Virus record (IMG/VR): IMGVR_UViG_3300032770_000001 | Span: 124,001-188,000 of that record | Length of the DNA: 64,000 bases | Strand: one strand, 5' to 3' | Shown here: one piece after another, positions 3,862 through 26,239 of the stretch | Numbering within the stretch: position 1 is the first letter of the stretch | Layout of the letters: every line of letters begins with the position of its first letter | Notes under the pieces: generated by a model | Told to the model about the DNA's origin: nothing | Databases searched by the model: none | Seen by the model: only the letters and a program-made list of their open reading frames with translations | Translations under genes and position numbers: made by a program

Positions 3862-4432
3862 ACGTAAATATCGTACAACCTTGCTGAATGGAACGGCTCC
3901 CGAAGGGGATAAGGCGTGGTGCGTACACTGCGATGAATATGCGTATGATGAAGAGGGAAAGGCCATCGGCCCTGATCCCTGCAAACCACACACCTGCGAC
4001 TGCGAATGCCACACTAAGGCTCGTAAGCCGAAGTGCCTGTGTGCCGTAGTGGAAATTGAGAATCCGTGGGATTCCCCGGTCGGCTGCTGCATGGATTGCG
4101 ACTGCTTCTGCCACGTCGCCGAACAGAAGGAAGCAGACCGTACTAAGAAAAAACGAGACGCTCTGTGGAAAGCGGAGTTGAAGCGGCAGGAGGACGAGCG
4201 GTTCAAGAAAGAAGGCGTGCACGACTGGGAGAAGAAAGTGTTGGAATACCTCCTGCTCGATCCTAGCAGTTTGGATTTTAAGTACCGTTCATTCTTGGAG
4301 GCGTTGGCTTTTTCTGACAAAGCCGCCGCAGCCGGGAAGAAAGAGACGGGCACCGCGTTTATGAAACGAATGGCGACCACGCCGTGGGGATCGGTCTTCA
4401 TCGATGTCCACCGATTTCAGCCCGTAAAATAA
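3854..4432 (+). CDS. Cys-rich hypothetical protein
   Basis: 192-aa ORF with CxxC/CxCxCH clusters; ends just before a promoter. Confidence 0.7.
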   Translation: MSKRKYRTTLLNGTAPEGDKAWCVHCDEYAYDEEGKAIGPDPCKPHTCDCECHTKARKPKCLCAVVEIENPWDSPVGCCMDCDCFCHVAEQKEADRTKKKRDALWKAELKRQEDERFKKEGVHDWEKKVLEYLLLDPSSLDFKYRSFLEALAFSDKAAAAGKKETGTAFMKRMATTPWGSVFIDVHRFQPVK

Positions 4433-4446
4433 TTTTCCGCAGGTAG

Positions 4447-4475
4447 TTGACAAAAGTCTGCTACCGTGGTATTCA
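4447..4475 (+). promoter_or_regulatory. Sigma70-type promoter of the Tyr/Leu tRNA operon
   Basis: TTGACA 4447-4452, 17-nt spacer ending TGG, TATTCA 4470-4475. Confidence 0.75.
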
Positions 4476-4491
4476 TATAGTAGAGCAATTT

Positions 4492-4578
4492 ATGAACCGT
4501 GTCTTCCTAGCATCGTTGCGACTGTATAGCTACCTTAGCGGTGGCTTCGGCGAACGTGTGCGTTGGCGCGGTTGGTAA
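4492..4578 (+). CDS. Putative 28-aa leader peptide MNRVFLASLRLYSYLSGGFGERVRWRGW
   Basis: ATG 16 nt after the -10 element; codons CTA, TTG, CTG, TAT, TAC, CTT clustered; followed by a terminator. Confidence 0.7.
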   Translation: MNRVFLASLRLYSYLSGGFGERVRWRGW

Positions 4579-4600
4579 AAGGCTAACAAAACGTTCGAGA

Positions 4601-4635
4601 GAAGCCGCCAAGGAATTGGCGGCTTTTCCATTTTT
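4601..4635 (+). terminator. Intrinsic terminator (attenuator) ahead of the tRNA genes
   Basis: AAGCCGCCAA-GGAA-TTGGCGGCTT 10-bp stem followed by TTCCATTTTT. Confidence 0.85.
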
Positions 4636-9752: not shown

Positions 9753-10413
9753 ATGATTGTTGAAATTCGAGCAGCGGAAGGTGGAGATGACGCAAAGCTT
9801 CTCGTGTCCGACCAACTCACGATCTATGCGAGATTGGCGGCTCGGAGGGGTCTTTGAGTTTGAGATAACCGAAGAACGTCCCGGCATAGCGGTGTTTCAG
9901 GTGACGGGACAGGGAGCCCCGGCGTTGTTTGCAAATGAGAGCGGGGGGCACCGTTGGCAGCGAGTTCCGCCGACCGAACGATACGGACGACGGCAGACAT
10001 CGACAATCACTGTCGCAGTTTTCGAGGAGCCGAAGGTCGAAGAGATCAACATTCGTGCTCAGGATTTAGAGTGGGATACGTTCCGGAGCCGTGGTAAGGG
10101 CGGACAGAACGTTAACAAGGTCGAGACGGCTGTTCGCGTGACGCACAAGCCGAGTGGCTTGGTCGTGCGTTGTGAGAATGGCCGTAGTCAGTGGCATAAT
10201 AAGCGAACCGCTTTGCAGATTCTTGCGGCACGGTTGGAAGCGCGAGATCGAGAGCAGAGACAAAGCGTAGTGGTTGCAGATCGTCGGTCGCAGATCGGCA
10301 CAGGGCAGCGAGGCGACAAACGTCGTACAGCAAACGAGCGACAGGATCAAGTCACGGATCATGTCACCGGGCAGAAATGGCGCTATACTGATTACGTGAA
10401 GGGGAACTGGTAA
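9753..10413 (+). CDS. Class I release factor homolog (RF1-like PxT, GGQ, no N-terminal domain 1), expressed through a +1 frameshift at CTT-TGA 9852-9857
   Basis: ORF0 MIVEIRAAEGGDDAKLL...RRGL* (9753-9857); the +1 frame continues with RVPPTE, GGQNVNKVETAVR, RSQIG; GGAG RBS at 9742. Confidence 0.9.
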
Positions 10414-11909: not shown

Positions 11910-12227
11910 ATGCGTCACCCTCGCACCCGCGACGAACGTCGCGCTGTACGCGAGCAGATCATTGCTCGTCGCAAATTTATCGCAACCCAGATTTGGGACA
12001 TTCCGTCCTACGTCCGCCCTCCGCATGAAGGCGAATGGAACCGTTGGTCGAAGCCAGAGGAATGGGAGCCATTTCAGTGGGGTCGCTACCACAAGTGGAA
12101 CATGAACTGTGGCGATACCATGTGTCATGGTGCGAAGTATTTCAAATGCGCTTCCAAGCGTCGTAAAGCACGCAAGGAAGCCGAGTCAACCGCCGAGTTT
12201 CGTCGTCGAAATAAGGCCATCGATTGA
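11910..12227 (+). CDS. Basic hypothetical protein
   Basis: 105 aa, Arg/Lys/Trp-rich; GGAGG upstream. Confidence 0.65.
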   Translation: MRHPRTRDERRAVREQIIARRKFIATQIWDIPSYVRPPHEGEWNRWSKPEEWEPFQWGRYHKWNMNCGDTMCHGAKYFKCASKRRKARKEAESTAEFRRRNKAID

Positions 12228-12252
12228 CAATGAAAAGACTTTGGACTAGCGT
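12224..12252 (+). promoter_or_regulatory. Possible sigma70 promoter of the ncRNA array
   Basis: TTGACA 12224-12229, 17 nt, TAGCGT. Confidence 0.45.
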
Positions 12253-12309
12253 ATTATTTATTGCGGGGTCTGGTTAAACCCTAGTGGCGATGACCACTCC
12301 CCGGTTTTA

Positions 12310-12505
12310 CCCCGGCACCCGATACGCAACGGGGCGCTAGTGATTAGGAAGGGTCGAGGCGAACTGCGTGCCCCCAAGGTGGGGCTAGCCGAAAGCCCGG
12401 ATAACGTCCGACGTGGTGCCCGGTTCTAGTCAACCGTCGTGCGTCTACCTTTCGGGGAATTACAAGTACCCGAAAGGACGTGATGATGCAGTGCACTTGC
12501 CGGGG
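12310..12505 (+). ncRNA. Structured RNA A (about 195 nt, class unknown)
   Basis: Closing stem CCCCGGCA/TGCCGGGG; CCTTTCGGG/CCCGAAAGG; GCCCC/GGGGC. Confidence 0.55.
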
Positions 12506-12526
12506 TTCTTTGATCTTTGATAGTTT

Positions 12527-12762
12527 TAGAGTCGAGTGGCCCGTGATTCAACTGGTTCAGTGGTTTCAGTAAGAGGGTCGAATGGCCTGTCAGGGACAAA
12601 TAGATACTCCCTGAGCGATGTTAGACCGCTATCCCCAGTATAAAAAACGCAGCAGCGGGGGCAGTATCCGTAAGGACTGCGGGAGGCTCCACGAAAAGGT
12701 GCTAGACAACCTGTGGGAGGCCGTATCGGGGTTCTAGCTAAACCGACCTGTGCTCGACTCTA
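12527..12762 (+). ncRNA. Structured RNA B (about 236 nt, class unknown)
   Basis: 11-bp closing stem TAGAGTCGAGT/GCTCGACTCTA; flanked by T-runs. Confidence 0.65.
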
Positions 12763-12770
12763 ATTTTTAT

Positions 12771-12862
12771 GGCGGATGCCCGGATAGCGTAAGCAGTCAC
12801 GTGAAAGTCGTGTTAACAGCCGGGGCGGGGATGTTGGCGTAAGCCAAGCGAACCATCCGCCA
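12771..12862 (+). ncRNA. Structured RNA C (92 nt, GNRA loops, ends in CCA)
   Basis: GGCGGATG/CATCCGCC closing stem; GTAA, GAAA and GTAA tetraloops. Confidence 0.6.
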
Positions 12863-12867
12863 AGGTT

Positions 12868-12939
12868 TTGCCGCTGTGGTATGAAACGCTACCAAATGGG
12901 CACGGTTCCGAAAGGACGCAATGGCCCTGCCAGCGGCAA
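12868..12939 (+). ncRNA. Structured RNA D (72 nt)
   Basis: TTGCCGCTG/CAGCGGCAA closing stem; TCC-GAAA-GGA hairpin. Confidence 0.55.
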
Positions 12940-12948
12940 CGTTTTTGA

Positions 12949-13025
12949 TGCGGGGTGGAGCAGTCAGGTAGCTTGTCGGGCTCATAACCCGAAGGTCGGC
13001 GGTTCAAATCCGTCCCCCGCTTCCA
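12949..13025 (+). tRNA. Initiator tRNA-fMet(CAT)
   Basis: Three G-C pairs in TCGGG-CTCATAA-CCCGA; unpaired 1:72 (U:U); CCA. Confidence 0.9.
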
Positions 13026-13029
13026 AGTG

Positions 13030-13318
13030 TTCGCCGCCGTGGGTTGTTAGTTGTACTCAGAGTGCCGTCAGGAACAGCAAGATCGTACTAGTACCTGAGA
13101 GCGCAACCCACGGTTTAGAGGCGATTGCCGTCACCTGCGGATGTAGTACGGTCTGGGCGTCAGGTGCGCCGGGTCGGTGACCCAGACCGGAGCGACATCG
13201 TTGACCGGACATTCCGGTTTCGTTAGCAGGTCCTCATGGGACATCAGCATGGTGCCTGAGTAGTGCTGAAGTTCGAGGAACCGCGAAAGCGTGAAACCTG
13301 TGAAGCGATCCTCAGGCC
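13030..13318 (+). ncRNA. Structured RNA E with an H-type pseudoknot
   Basis: CCGTGGGTTG/CAACCCACGG; crossing helices CACCTG/CAGGTG and CGGTCTGGG/CCCAGACCG. Confidence 0.6.
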
Positions 13319-13331
13319 GATCTTTGAAAAG
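13319..13331 (+). promoter_or_regulatory. rRNA-type boxA-like element
   Basis: GATCTTTGAAAAG between two structured RNAs. Confidence 0.55.
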
Positions 13332-13332
13332 T

Positions 13333-13482
13333 TTGCGGCGGCGTTCCCGGTGTCCCGTCAATAGACTGGTTCCTGACCGGATACGTGAGTAATCGTTCTT
13401 CAAGGGGTGAAATAAAAGAACGGCGCAGAACAGGTTCCTGCGCGTGGGGCTGTGATTTTCCAGCTACTACCTCTCGCCGCAA
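13333..13482 (+). ncRNA. Structured RNA F (150 nt)
   Basis: TTGCGGCG/CGCCGCAA closing stem; GCGCAG/CTGCGC and CGTTCTT/AAGAACG hairpins. Confidence 0.55.
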
Positions 13483-13489
13483 TATAACA

Positions 13490-14025
13490 AATCTGCAAGT
13501 TGCATTCCGATGCCCGAAGCGCCCGATGAGGGTTTGCGGACGGTAGCGTGACTTGCGGAGGGTAGGTGAACGGCTTCACAGCCGCCGTCGAAAGACGGGC
13601 AAGTCCGCCGTAAATTCGGGACGACGTTCACCCGGTCAGGCACTACTAAAACAGAACCGTGGGGTGCCGTCAGTCGAGAGACTGGATGTTTCTGATTGCG
13701 CATGGCATGGCGAGGTCTCCCTATGTTTGGACGGAGGCAGGCCCTTTTCGACAAGGGACATACGTCAGAGCGGAATCACGGTGGGTATGTGGTTGGAACC
13801 ATCCATGTAGTGGCCTGACGCCTAATTTCAGTTTCCGGTCGTGGCGGAAAAGAGACGATAAACAAATAGAGACGCTAAAACTCGCTGAGAGGATGTACCC
13901 TGATTTCGACAGGGATTCTCAGCCTGTGAGACTCTGTAGGTAGCACCCACGTCTGACAGATGTTAGTGGCTCGAAAGAGCAGCAGAGTCATGCACCGTGG
14001 AGAATCGGGAATCGGTGCCGACTGG
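13490..14025 (+). ncRNA. Large ornate RNA (about 540 nt; GOLLD/ROOL-like candidate)
   Basis: Many nested helices including a long-range 13635-13646/13807-13819 pairing, GNRA loops, no credible CDS. Confidence 0.65.
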
Positions 14026-14103
14026 AAGATTTTTGGAGACAACATGAATAGCACTCACACCCCGACCGGATGACCCTTGCTCATCCTTCGGAGGTAAGGT
14101 AAT

Positions 14104-14361
14104 ATGGCATGTGACACCTGTATCTTTCTGAACAACGTTCGGACCCGCCCGGTAGGGAAGGGAAAGGACGAGCAGAAAGGCGAGAAGCTGGAGCCCTGCT
14201 CCATGAAATATGCCTGCAATCCGTTTTGGGACGGAGCGCAGGGAGTGGGCAAGGTCGTGACTGAGTCGTACTGTGCGACCTGCTCGGAAGTAGCTGACAA
14301 ATGTGGATGCACGCAAGGATTGCGTGTGATCCGGCAGCGCAAGCTGCATTATGCTCGGTAA
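14104..14361 (+). CDS. Cys-rich small protein
   Basis: 85 aa with CxxC repeats; GGAGG upstream. Confidence 0.55.
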   Translation: MACDTCIFLNNVRTRPVGKGKDEQKGEKLEPCSMKYACNPFWDGAQGVGKVVTESYCATCSEVADKCGCTQGLRVIRQRKLHYAR

Positions 14362-23641: not shown

Positions 23642-26239
23642 ATGGCAGAGAAACCACTTCCAAAGCGTGAGCGGGGCACCCACACCAAAATCGGTAGCAC
23701 GGCAATTAAGCGTCCGGTTTCCAAGGGACCGGACGGTAAGGAATACGCCTCGGCTGGACGCTACACCCACATGAACAAAAAGGGTGAGGTCGTGGAAGAC
23801 TCGATCTCGGCGCAGCTTCGCGCCATCAAAGCTCAGGCTCAGTCCGGTGTAGTGAGTAACAACCCGAACGCCGGATGGGGCATGTACGAGGCAGCTAAGA
23901 TCGCTGCCGGATTGTTCAACGACGGCGGACTGGGCACCGCCGACATCGCCGATTCCAATAACATCGGCTACTACAGCTATGAATTCCCGGTTGACGCTCT
24001 CGAACTCCCGGCGTCCCGTGCAGAAGAACTCCGTTTCTACCGTCTGGCATACGACCGCGATCCAATCGTTGGTCGCGCTATCGACTTGCACACGGAACTC
24101 CCGGTCAGCAAGATGACCATGGAGAAGCCGAAGTCTTCCTCTGAAGAGTACGCCGACTACGTGTTCGACGACTTCCAACGCATGGTCAATCGTACCCGCC
24201 TGTTCCAAGTCATCATCGATGCTGCCCGTGAATACTGGTGCATCGGCGAGACTTTCATGTTCATTGAAGACCCCGAAGAGATTGAGCCGTGCAAGGAAGC
24301 CGCCAAGACCCTCGATAAGGAAGGTAAGGGCGGCGGTAGCGGCACTGAGCAGGGCATGGAATCAGCGTGGCATCCGCCGATGGGCGGCTCAGCCGACTCG
24401 ATTCTGGACTACCTCCAGCCCGAAAAGCGTTCCTCATGGATCAAGAAACGTGCCTCCGTGCTGGATGAAATCAAGAAGGCGGGTATCGCTTTTGATTTCT
24501 ACGAAAATCCGGATGCGGTCGATTCTCGCATTAAGGAAAAGCGTGCTGATCTCAACAAGCTGACCCGGAAGCTCGCTAAGGAAGTGGGTGTTCCAGCGAA
24601 GACTCTTGCCAAGCTCATTATCGACGCCGACAGCGGCGACAAGAAGACCGCGAAAGCGGCAAAGATCAAGATGGCAAAGCTCATCGGTCGCACATTAGGT
24701 GACGATGAGCATCCGCTTCAAGTTACGGCGGATATGACCAAGGTTGCGCAACCTCCTGCCGCTCCTCCTGCGGAGCCTGCGGCTGGTGGTGCGGGTGCCG
24801 GGGCTCCTCCGGGGGCTGATGTCCCTGTGGATGCTCCCGGTGCTGAGGGTGGTGAAGGTGCTCCTCTCGGTGAGGGCGGTTTGGGCGACATCGAGGGTAT
24901 GGGCGGTGGTGGGGCTCCTCCGATGGGTGGAGGCGGGGGCGGTGGTCCGATTGGTACGCCCGGTGGGGCGGTGCCGGATGTCAAGGGCGCTATAGCCATG
25001 GGTGCGACCATCAGTGCTCAGCGTGAGTTGATGGAACTCAAGCACCTGTTGAAACTCCTCGAAAAGCAGAAAGAACTGCTCAAGGAATTGAAAGAGACTC
25101 GTGAAGAGAAGCGCGAGGAGATGGAGTTGTTCTCGCACATTACGAACAAGGACTACGAGGGTCCGGATCGTGTGCAGATTCTTCCGCCTGAACAGATTGA
25201 GATCACCAACGAAGGCACGCTCACTGACGGCCCGACGATCTATTACAAACCGCCTGAGGCACAGAAACAGGCGTACCTCGAAGACCCTGAAGTTCCGAAT
25301 CAGGTCAAGGACGTGATTCAGAGCGAGGGCAAGATTCCGCTCAACCAAGACCCGTTCTCCGGTTCTTACGTGATTCACTTTGCGCGTAAGAAGTCCGGCT
25401 ACGAACTGCATGGTCGCTCGATCCTGCAACGCTGTATTCGCACGATCATCTACCGTGAAAAGCTCCGTCAGGTGCAGTCCACGTTGGCGTCTCGCAACAT
25501 GACGCCGAAGCGTTTGATCGTGGCTCCTGACATTCCGGCATCCGAAGTCATGGCTCTCCGTGCACACATCGACGAAGCCATCGCCGATCCGGACTACTCA
25601 GTGGTTGTCAATTATGAGTGCCGCTGGGAAGAAATTGGTTCGGAAGGCCGTCTGCTCACGCTTGACGCCGAATGGAACCACACCAACTCGGACTTGGCAA
25701 TCGGTCTCGGTCTGTCGCCGGAAATTCTGATCGGCGAAGGCATGTACTCCGGCAACCGCATTCAGTTGGAAATCATGAACGTGTCGTACCTCCAGTTCCG
25801 CGACCTTCTCACGTATGTGATTGAAGAACAAATCTTCAAGCCCTACGCCATGAAGAAGGGCTTCTACGAAATGGACAAGTACGGTCGCCCACGTTGGATT
25901 TACCCGAAGGTCACGTTCAGCCGCATGGCTCTCCGCGACTCCGGTGACCTGTACGACATGCTCTTCAATTTGTACTCGAAGGGCTCGCTGCCAGTCGAAG
26001 TTATTTACGAGTTCCTGAACCTCGATCCTGAGGATTGCGAACGTAAGCTGGAAGAGTCGCTGTTCACCGTTAAGGACGCGAAGTTCAGTCAGTTGCTCGA
26101 CAACATCTACAACTCGATGGGCGAGTGGCTCATGGCGAACACCGATCTGGGTAAGCGCATCACCGAGGGTCTGCAACTGAACGAGGTTGACGCCGATCTG
26201 CAAGACGAAGGACCTGAGGGTTCAGGCGAAGGTATGTAA
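23642..26239 (+). CDS. Portal protein with a large low-complexity insert
   Basis: DPIVGRAIDLH..., HFARK...HGRSILQRC, LAIGLGLSPEIL: the pattern of large-phage portal proteins. Confidence 0.75.
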   Translation: MAEKPLPKRERGTHTKIGSTAIKRPVSKGPDGKEYASAGRYTHMNKKGEVVEDSISAQLRAIKAQAQSGVVSNNPNAGWGMYEAAKIAAGLFNDGGLGTADIADSNNIGYYSYEFPVDALELPASRAEELRFYRLAYDRDPIVGRAIDLHTELPVSKMTMEKPKSSSEEYADYVFDDFQRMVNRTRLFQVIIDAAREYWCIGETFMFIEDPEEIEPCKEAAKTLDKEGKGGGSGTEQGMESAWHPPMGGSADSILDYLQPEKRSSWIKKRASVLDEIKKAGIAFDFYENPDAVDSRIKEKRADLNKLTRKLAKEVGVPAKTLAKLIIDADSGDKKTAKAAKIKMAKLIGRTLGDDEHPLQVTADMTKVAQPPAAPPAEPAAGGAGAGAPPGADVPVDAPGAEGGEGAPLGEGGLGDIEGMGGGGAPPMGGGGGGGPIGTPGGAVPDVKGAIAMGATISAQRELMELKHLLKLLEKQKELLKELKETREEKREEMELFSHITNKDYEGPDRVQILPPEQIEITNEGTLTDGPTIYYKPPEAQKQAYLEDPEVPNQVKDVIQSEGKIPLNQDPFSGSYVIHFARKKSGYELHGRSILQRCIRTIIYREKLRQVQSTLASRNMTPKRLIVAPDIPASEVMALRAHIDEAIADPDYSVVVNYECRWEEIGSEGRLLTLDAEWNHTNSDLAIGLGLSPEILIGEGMYSGNRIQLEIMNVSYLQFRDLLTYVIEEQIFKPYAMKKGFYEMDKYGRPRWIYPKVTFSRMALRDSGDLYDMLFNLYSKGSLPVEVIYEFLNLDPEDCERKLEESLFTVKDAKFSQLLDNIYNSMGEWLMANTDLGKRITEGLQLNEVDADLQDEGPEGSGEGM

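Follow-up and report, generated by a model that had tools for sequence, protein, structure and literature searches.

The closest analogues of the RNAs described here are rnaC (species 1) and rnaD (species 2) of phage T4, which are ~120-140 nucleotides (nt) long, lie directly after tRNA-Arg on the same strand in the T4 tRNA cluster, and are transcribed together with the tRNAs and freed by tRNA-processing enzymes. GOLLD (RF01998) and ROOL (RF03087), each a single RNA of about 580-800 nt, are commonly found next to tRNA genes in phages and prophages, and GOLLD can enclose a tRNA. The YrlA (RF02553) Y RNA-like RNAs are modular, tRNA-mimicking small RNAs that are found in phages too, and theta (hepatitis delta virus (HDV)-like) ribozymes, which shape tRNA ends, are small structured RNAs that lie a few nucleotides from phage tRNA genes. 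Here, we analyzed a stretch of about 1.8 kilobases (kb), positions 12,260-14,030 of a 64,000-nt DNA (hereafter the window; bases 124,001-188,000 of a 455,708-base pair (bp) IMG/VR virus record that is rated complete and labeled G000). The original prediction, made from the sequence of the window, was that this stretch is an array of distinct structured non-coding RNAs around an initiator tRNA, and we found six conserved folded units plus the initiator tRNA. We think it probable that the stretch is a non-coding operon in a tRNA island, made up of modular folded-RNA genes around the initiator tRNA; this reading includes the units that we call U1, U2, U3, U6b, U7, and U10, and possibly U4, U5, and U6a.

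Like rnaC and rnaD, the units of the window lie in a tRNA cluster, on the strand of the tRNAs, and have no assigned function. They differ in that rnaC ends in a tRNA-like T-arm, which none of the window's units does, and in that the window holds at least six distinct units compared with two in T4. A BLAST search of the stretch against GenBank phages returned the tRNA as the sole match; for units other than U10, this search was the only comparison with rnaC and rnaD. U10 and the T4 RNAs have no motifs in common, and homology between them was rejected, as the best match of our U10 model (R2, see below) in the T4 tRNA region scored 9.5 bits (E ~1) and lay in segB. The stretch resembles GOLLD and ROOL in that a tRNA is embedded among ornate RNA, but its units are separable modules of 90-235 nt that are shuffled among relatives; because relatives carry the units independently, the units are not domains of a single RNA. 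Elements of this kind, stable RNAs within a phage tRNA cluster, have been familiar since T4, and the individual RNAs appear, from their sequences, to be new families.

Folded RNA units and their relatives

The stretch holds about 11 units. These, together with the promoter-like site and the two small open reading frames (ORFs) that frame the array, are as follows (amino acids, aa; minimum free energy, MFE).

11910-12227, + strand: basic 105-aa ORF with a Cys/His cluster, framing the RNA array upstream.
12230-12257, + strand: promoter-like site with -35 ATGAAA, a 16-nt spacer and -10 TATTAT (9/12 in a consensus scan).
12263-12306, + strand: U0, a short 5' hairpin after the putative start (MFE -19.8, z -2.8).
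12309-12506, + strand: U1, ~200 nt, with a 9-bp closing stem (12309-12317 with 12498-12506) and a U-rich tract after it.
12528-12761, + strand: U2, a complex fold of ~234 nt with a 10-bp closing stem (12528-12537 with 12752-12761).
12771-12861, + strand: U3, a three-way junction of ~91 nt with an 8-bp acceptor-like closing stem.
12868-12939, + strand: U4, a candidate three-way junction of 72 nt with a 9-bp closing stem (MFE z -2.6).
12949-13025, + strand: initiator-type tRNA-Met (CAU) with an encoded CCA (ARAGORN; Rfam tRNA, 59 bits).
13037-13113, + strand: U5, a long imperfect hairpin with a 10-bp base, 13 bp with its extension (MFE -33, z -4.0).
13127-13185, + strand: U6a, a conserved block with a hairpin (73% identity to positions 5083-5146 of L055).
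13223-13317, + strand: U6b, a pseudoknotted RNA of ~95 nt with a U-rich tract after it.
13335-13482, + strand: U7, ~148 nt, with an 8-bp closing stem (homologues in L055, G006, and G010).
13494-13816, + strand: U8 and U9, lineage-specific, with no supported structure (z -0.4 and -0.07).
13832-14028, + strand: U10, with a 10-bp closing stem (13832-13841 with 14019-14028) and a U-run after it.
14104-14361, + strand: Cys-rich 85-aa ORF, framing the RNA array downstream.

The units had been proposed by eye on the grounds that each is closed by a stem of its own. The closing stems of U1, U2, U3, U4, U5, U7, and U10 are indeed found where they had been placed, with lengths of 8-10 bp, but U8 and U9 are unsupported and the number of such stems is not above chance: we counted 17 long-range helices of 8 bp or more, compared with 14.5 ± 3.6 in dinucleotide-shuffled sequences, and 26 of 100 shuffles reached 17. 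As a consequence, the by-eye stem criterion proves nothing alone. Single-sequence folding gave equally mixed z-scores, from -4.0 to -0.07, and validation of the units depends on comparison with relatives. About 12 related contigs, most of them from peat, bog, and wetland metagenomes, were recruited through the portal protein, two DNA words from U2 and one DNA word from U1; the flanking small proteins, used as search handles, recovered no relatives. The relatives comprise three complete or near-complete genomes of 300-463 kb (G005, G007, and G009), a 223-kb fragment (G010) and shorter fragments (G001, G006, G012, L055, L056, L058, L061, L064, and L065). Compensatory changes in these homologues were found for U1, U2, U3, U6b, U7, and U10, which bears out the prediction at the point where covariation had been named as the check, and each of the conserved units is present in a single copy in the genome in model searches.

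The most extensive comparison was possible for U2, which is 80-86% conserved across ten distinct sequences. In the alignment of these sequences (A3), the 59 pairs of the U2 fold are 97% paired and include 19 compensatory changes, a level reached by none of 500 shuffles; when the partners were slid, pairing fell to 30-43%. U2 has a three-way junction topology, with two invariant strands (21 nt at 12538-12558 and 29 nt at 12633-12661), a GUAA-capped hairpin at 12668-12675 and a variable hairpin at ~12563-12626, which is cut to ~30 nt in half of the relatives. Further, a loop-loop kissing helix between 12701-12706 and 12733-12738 shows covariation, with two changes each of CG to AU and of AU to UA. 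The conserved G.U pairs in U2 indicate that the RNA is read from the + strand. With the U2 model (R1), one copy of U2 was recovered from G000 and no copy from G002-G005, which are more distant relatives; an exact 19-mer of U2 gave five matches in the genomes of 185,579 bacterial species, all of them chance matches and none confirmed by R1, and a U2 sequence in L050 was likewise discarded as a chance match inside a coding region. U2 can lie very close to tRNAs, being 10 nt 5' of tRNA-Met in G007 and 4 nt 3' of a tRNA in L061.

We note that the U2 core, which reads ...ACUGG-UUC...CCAGU-AUAAAAAAC..., is reminiscent of the preQ1-I riboswitch (RF00522), in which P1 is followed by UUC, the return strand of P1 and an A-rich tail. 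However, U2 has no P2 pseudoknot strand; its A-tract is followed by a self-contained CGC-AGCA-GCG hairpin, within the three-way junction. Further, the position equivalent to the ligand-pairing C of preQ1-I varies between C and U, and the Rfam preQ1-I model gave no match, short-hairpin variants of U2 included. The preQ1-I resemblance, which fails on topology, key position and Rfam model, and a hammerhead resemblance in the U2 junction were both judged to be superficial.

U1 has an invariant core, CCGACGUGGUGCCCG (12408-12422), and its 52 predicted pairs include 18 compensatory changes across five sequences (alignment A7); additional homologues are present in G010, G011, and G012. A motif that overlaps the promoter-like site, ACTAGCGTATTA (12245-12256), is unique in the window and is kept just 5' of U1 in L055, G001, G006, L065, and G010. 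Going by this placement, the promoter-like site is probably the start of a non-coding transcription unit. In several relatives, U1 and U2 are separated by a 63-aa ORF, which neither the window nor L055 has; in both of these, U2 follows U1. The 63-aa ORF begins MAIALDKK, has its own Shine-Dalgarno site, and is located at L047:1418-1612 and at homologous sites in L044, L065, and L156 (1444-1637 of the reverse complement). A U10-like piece between U1 and U2 in G001 was found to belong to this ORF and is not a copy of the RNA.

Support for the smaller units comes from fewer sequences. The U3 homologue in G010 fills the slot between two tRNA genes, 6-7 nt from each, and the two distinct U3 sequences that exist differ by compensatory changes in the closing stem (GGCGGAUG/CAUCCGCC versus GGUGGAUG/CAUCCACC) and in an inner stem (CCCGG/CCGGG versus CCCUG/CAGGG), with an insertion that is limited to the tip of one hairpin. 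Scans for a wider distribution of U1, U2, and U3 found them in the window's own clade only. In U6b, which is present in G001, G006, G007, and G010, a hairpin loop (GCCUGAG, 13254-13260) pairs with CUCAGGC (13311-13317) to form a pseudoknot, both sides of which are changed in G007 (GUCUGAG/CUCAGAC); overall, its 34 pairs include seven compensatory changes across five sequences (A8). In U7, a 7-bp hairpin (CGUUCUU/AAGAACG, around 13394-13423) is invariant and another hairpin, on the 3' side, is conserved; the 38 pairs of U7 include five compensatory changes across three sequences (A9), giving moderate support. The stem of U6a also shows paired changes relative to L055, in a comparison of two sequences only. 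Of the rest, U4 was found solely in L064, a fragment from a near-identical strain, a search for U5 homologues in the relatives was empty, and U5 may be a processing or terminator-type hairpin. U0 is replaced in the relatives by unrelated hairpins at the same place, the comparison gave no covariation evidence for it, and its 5' end resembles the start of the tRNA-Met gene. For U8 and U9, neither homologues among the relatives nor a significant fold was found.

The original prediction also held that the stretch contains no credible coding sequence. The gene-free interval extends from the stop of the 105-aa ORF (12227) to the start of the 85-aa ORF (14104), and no ORF spans 12,260-14,030 in any frame, either with the standard code or with TAG, TGA, and TAA read through, a check that was needed because the phage carries suppressor tRNAs. 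The short ORFs within the stretch overlap one another and the tRNA, and match no Pfam or PHROG family. In a six-frame tblastn comparison with the relatives, the same DNA is similar in several frames and on both strands, which indicates that conservation is at the nucleotide and not at the protein level. On these three grounds (no frame opens on read-through, frame-inconsistent tblastn similarity, no Pfam or PHROG match), a recoded protein gene was rejected, and the claim held.

Known RNA families were sought with the 4227 covariance models of Rfam 15 in the window, at gathering and permissive thresholds, and in the 1.8 kb separately. Across the window, tRNAs were the sole matches at either threshold. 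The separate search (12240-14060, E ≤10) returned nothing besides the tRNA. This agrees with the statement that signatures of RNase P RNA, transfer-messenger RNA (tmRNA), signal recognition particle RNA, and 6S RNA are absent, and with the description of the RNAs as unclassified, as no unit apart from tRNA-Met matches a catalogued family; GOLLD and ROOL, too, had no match in the stretch at this threshold, nor was there a match to the HDV-like, twister, hammerhead, pistol, or hatchet ribozymes. The tRNA itself carries the marks of an initiator (CAU anticodon, GGG/CCC anticodon stem, U1.U72 mismatch, and A11:U24) and is 80-92% conserved in the relatives. In G005, the tRNA-Met homologue (L048:1691-1795) has ~32 nt between its aligned halves and is not called by ARAGORN; the interruption may be an intron or an insertion near the anticodon loop.

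The flanking ORFs and the frame from tRNA-Met to tRNA-Phe are syntenic among the relatives, and within this frame the order and content of the units vary among G001, G006, G007, G009, G010, G012, L055, and L061, for example as follows.

G006: U10, ..., U1, ORF, U2, tRNA-fMet, U6b, U7, U10.
G007: U2 immediately before tRNA-fMet, then U6b.
G009: tRNA-Met, Y-RNA-like element, U2, U10.
G010: tRNA, U3, tRNA, ..., U1, ORF, ..., tRNA-fMet, ..., U6b, U7, U10.
G012: U1 and U10.
G005: RNase P RNA, tRNA-Met with an insertion, U10.

This indicates that the units are separate modules, tied neither to one another nor to any protein gene. Variation is also seen between close strains. A low-depth contig from another wetland joins 13329 to a U10-type start near 13854 and skips the 524 nt that hold U7-U9, indicating a strain without 13330-13853. 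A second strain variant, in another wetland sample, has a junction between 13850 and 13987 and is missing the 136 nt of the U10 central insertion (13851-13986). These block-skipping contigs show that near-identical strains differ by entire RNA modules. Strain L064 is 97.7% identical to the window through U2-U4 and then has ~340 nt of different sequence (L064:484-822) before the initiator tRNA.

An Rfam search of 19 related or family loci found tRNAs, together with RNase P RNA, YrlA-like, and weak wcaG-like matches in relatives. The YrlA-like matches are full-length and below the gathering score of 69: one, in G009 (L046:2365-2478, - strand, 38.8 bits), lies directly upstream of U2 within the phage tRNA island, and the other, likewise in a tRNA island, is at L082:6065-6186 (33.5 bits). 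A Y RNA acting with Ro60 was rejected for the phage studied here, in which the best RF02553 matches score 21 bits and fall on tRNAs, and in which no TROVE/Ro60 gene was found. The wcaG-like matches (30-33 bits, gathering score 42) are at L047:3137-3221 and L055:6144-6226, in both cases just 5' of the 85-aa ORF homologue, and at L045:2757-2837, between U6b and the tRNA-Phe genes; no such match is present in the window.

U10 and its phage family

U10, the last unit of the array, was retained even in the distant relative G005 and turned out to be a member of a widespread phage RNA family, beyond what could have been read from the window itself. Its 5' hairpin has a conserved loop (...GACGAUAAACAAAUAG..., within 13852-13872), and its 3' hairpin carries an invariant sequence of 17 nt, GUGGAGAAUCGGGAAUC (13997-14013), flanked by an ACC/GGU pairing. 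The 17-mer has exact matches at 71 loci in IMG/VR, compared with ~9 chance matches there for a 16-mer of U2. Among these matches, the stems around the 17-mer have wholly different sequences and always pair. In an alignment of 39 U10 sequences, pairing at the four inner positions is ~100% and draws on all four Watson-Crick types. A model built from these 39 sequences (R2), all of which are from outside the window's clade, recovers the window's U10 over its full length (13839-14021, 47.1 bits, E ~1e-9) and also the copies of G005 and G009.

The family has a 5' loop consensus of AGA(N)ACGAU(N4)AYAAA, which in the window reads GAGACGAUAAACAAAUAG (13852-13872), and a closing stem of 8-14 bp that usually ends 4-7 nt past the 3' hairpin; members of the window's clade have an extra central insertion of 60-130 nt. 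The contigs that carry it span base compositions from AT-rich to GC-rich, and many have lengths of 150-550 kb. A tRNA is found no more than 100 nt away from 23 of the 51 distinct copies and no more than 2 kb away from 38 of them, and the tRNAs in these loci are on the same strand as the RNA in 340 cases and on the opposite strand in four. In the window, the tRNAs nearest to U10 are 823 nt upstream and 1392 nt downstream, and all 16 tRNAs are on the + strand, as is U10, so that the window's copy has every feature of the family: the 17-mer hairpin, the 5' loop, the closing stem, and the same-strand tRNA setting. A protein partner encoded beside these RNAs was considered and rejected, as no protein family is common to more than 11 of 50 loci.

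Neither Rfam (E ≤0.1, in eight other phage loci with the U10 family) nor the searchable literature held any trace of U10, and BLAST of the 17-mer against GenBank phages gave chance matches only and no exact copy. As far as searched, and judging from these sequence comparisons, U10 would represent an undescribed class of RNA that is widespread. A loop-loop pairing between its two conserved loops is possible, as CGAU in one could pair with AUCG in the other; both sides are invariant, and a divergent second copy in G006 alters one side without compensation. A second, weak R2 match in the window (4386-4516, - strand, 17.5 bits, E 0.011) runs opposite to the tRNA strand, overlaps predicted ORFs and adjoins a strong terminator-like hairpin (4599-4628); it may be a chance match or a decayed copy.

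Proposed expression and mode of action, and competing explanations

We envisage that transcription would begin at the promoter-like site at 12230-12257 and proceed rightward together with the tRNAs, and that tRNA-processing nucleases, including RNase P (the RNA subunit of which is phage-encoded), would cut at the tRNA borders. The closing helices of 8-10 bp and the stem-plus-U-tract ends of U1, U6b, and U10 would protect or define the ends of the units, each of which would accumulate as a stable small RNA, like rnaC and rnaD, and would act in trans, as a folded RNA or as a protein-RNA particle, on a conserved component of host translation or tRNA metabolism. The parts of this scheme differ in strength. 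That U1, U2, U3, U6b, U7, and U10 are real structured RNA genes we regard as very probable. That they are co-transcribed and processed with the tRNAs seems rather probable from their spacing, their strand and the conserved promoter-like site; the position of all units on the tRNA strand, and of units in relatives 4-10 nt from tRNA genes, is consistent with a single precursor. A trans action on conserved host translation or tRNA metabolism machinery is suggested, if only tentatively, by the persistence of the 17 nt of U10 across AT-rich to GC-rich phages, by the fact that no particular protein gene travels with U10, and by the RNA-rich translation kit of the phage. With 61 tRNAs, a tmRNA, an RNase P RNA, and a release-factor-like gene in this phage, the setting would also suit, as a matter of context, the original suggestion of an RNA toolkit related to translation or defence.

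Several observations weigh against this reading. The terminal-stem count by itself is at chance level, the alignments of U3, U6a, and U7 contain two to three distinct sequences each, and U4, U5, U8, and U9 are without comparative support. Among the RNA sequencing runs searched, none contains the region, and the RNA runs that were listed share tRNA words only; the region is present in DNA metagenomes only, and these show strain variants. We infer the RNA ends, the processing and the stability of all units, and the assignment to translation or tRNA metabolism comes from context alone. Lastly, U1 precedes a small ORF in several relatives, and U1, U6b, and U10 end in stem-plus-U tracts, which means that some units could be cis-acting leaders or terminators.

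This last point leads to the explanation that some or all units are riboswitch- or attenuator-like leaders acting in cis through a 3' stem and U-tract, which would best suit U1 and which we consider unlikely (the likelihoods given here to the alternatives are not exclusive across units). Downstream of U1 in G001, G006, L065, and G010 come a U-run, a Shine-Dalgarno site, and the 63-aa ORF; U10 is ~75 nt 5' of the 85-aa ORF at 14104 and directly 5' of its homologue in G009; U6b and U10 each terminate in a helix with a U-tract after it; and in three relatives the 85-aa ORF has a weak wcaG-like match 5' of it. However, in the window and in L055 it is U2 and not an ORF that comes after U1, and in the relatives U2 and U3 are flanked by tRNAs or other RNA units. 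Further, the next gene in the U10 family is usually a tRNA of no fixed identity or no conserved protein, and Rfam 15 returned no riboswitch family match.

A role of one or more units, best of U10 or U2, as self-cleaving or otherwise catalytic RNAs that cut a polycistronic tRNA-RNA precursor appears to us distinctly unlikely. U2 and U10 hold invariant unpaired blocks in a covarying scaffold, the usual look of a catalytic or ligand-binding core, and adjoin tRNAs within a few nucleotides, and the theta ribozymes are a precedent for small ribozymes beside phage tRNAs. There is also a sub-threshold twister-like match ~450 nt from a U10-family member in L082. Yet no ribozyme family match was obtained with Rfam 15, no conserved candidate cleavage site was identified, and tRNA 5' ends are already provided for by the RNase P RNA of the phage. 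The L082 match, of twister-P1 type (L082:2327-2377, 41 bits, gathering score 67), is downstream of the U10-family RNA on a 193-kb, AT-rich contig packed with tRNAs.

More doubtful still is that the units form an anti-defence kit of decoys or inhibitors of host defences that target tRNAs or detect phage RNA. Host anticodon nucleases are known to be countered by the tRNA sets and tRNA-repair enzymes of phages. The units sit in a tRNA island, an RNA ligase and a phosphoesterase are found near some U10-family members, and the content of the cassette shifts quickly among close relatives, as is typical of arms-race loci. On the other hand, no mimicry of a specific tRNA element has been demonstrated, and the 17 nt in the U10 loop do not vary even among very different phages, a pattern more in keeping with a conserved housekeeping target than with defence proteins, which evolve fast.

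We give very little credence to the view that the stretch is junk or selfish DNA (tRNA genes in decay, a recoded gene, or miniature inverted-repeat elements with terminal repeats that resemble closing stems): although terminal stems are no commoner than in shuffled sequence, U8 and U9 are without fold or homologues, two tRNA(CUA) suppressors made recoding worth checking and the 5' end of U0 is tRNA-Met-like, inverted-repeat DNA elements do not explain the compensatory changes in internal helices, the kissing loop, and the pseudoknot, the conserved units are single copy, and the similarity to relatives is frame-inconsistent with no frame opening on read-through, so that this explanation is largely refuted for U1, U2, U3, U6b, U7, and U10 and is possible for U8 and U9.

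The tRNA island and the RNA repertoire of huge phages

The phage is uncultivated, and its assembly comes from a wetland metagenome; the proteins encoded in the window include phage replication and head functions (DNA polymerase, portal, and clamp loader). ARAGORN finds 16 tRNA genes in the window between 4,647 and 15,594, all on the + strand, and the genes between them include those for a release-factor-like protein, a NADAR protein and an HNH endonuclease. The framing 105-aa and 85-aa ORFs are kept in the relatives and match no known family, and the look-alikes of the 105-aa ORF are hypothetical viral proteins only; their constant placement beside the RNAs may reflect a functional link. The whole phage encodes 61 tRNA genes, a permuted tmRNA and its own class-A RNase P RNA, the latter two outside the window. 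Two tRNA(CUA) amber suppressors and one tRNA with a 4-base anticodon are also encoded elsewhere than in the window. The features of this translation kit are located as follows.

Window 9757-10413, + strand: release-factor-like protein of 218 aa (RF-1 and partial PCRF domains), among the tRNAs.
G000:C1:30867-31271 and 25852-26052, both - strand: permuted tmRNA and tRNA(CUA) region, outside the window.
G000:C1:92128-92502: full-length class-A RNase P RNA (167 bits), inside another tRNA array.

The suppressor tRNAs, the tmRNA, and the release-factor-like protein together hint at stop-codon recoding; read with the standard code, the window's long genes are uninterrupted. In G005, an RNase P RNA (255 bits, L048:1020-1395) lies directly beside tRNA-Met. 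The term "RNase P RNA" is absent from the text of the 2020 survey of huge phages.

Huge phages are known for their large tRNA sets; to our knowledge, the other content of their tRNA islands has hardly been examined. Our analysis indicates that the gaps between the tRNAs are not mere spacers and hold several conserved folded RNAs without a match in the catalogue. One of them, the U10 type, recurs in dozens of unrelated large phages with 17 nt constant, and such conservation is normally confined to catalytic cores or to binding sites for universal machinery. It is conceivable, although we hold it with some doubt, that U10 (at least 51 copies) is a new widespread class of phage RNA, a ribozyme or an RNA effector of translation or tRNA metabolism, with its invariant loops forming an active site or a binding face for a universal host target, and that U2 is a second new class with a complex fold. 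The diversity of U10 suffices for covariation modelling and for direct biochemistry, and the family provides a broader comparative setting for the 50-year-old puzzle of T4 rnaC and rnaD. Should the targets of these RNAs lie in host translation, tRNA processing, or defence, the RNAs would constitute a new layer of phage takeover and a source of new ribozymes or RNA effectors; and if U10 and U2 are new classes, then, together with the phage RNase P RNA and tmRNA, they would extend the functional-RNA repertoire of huge phages far beyond tRNAs.

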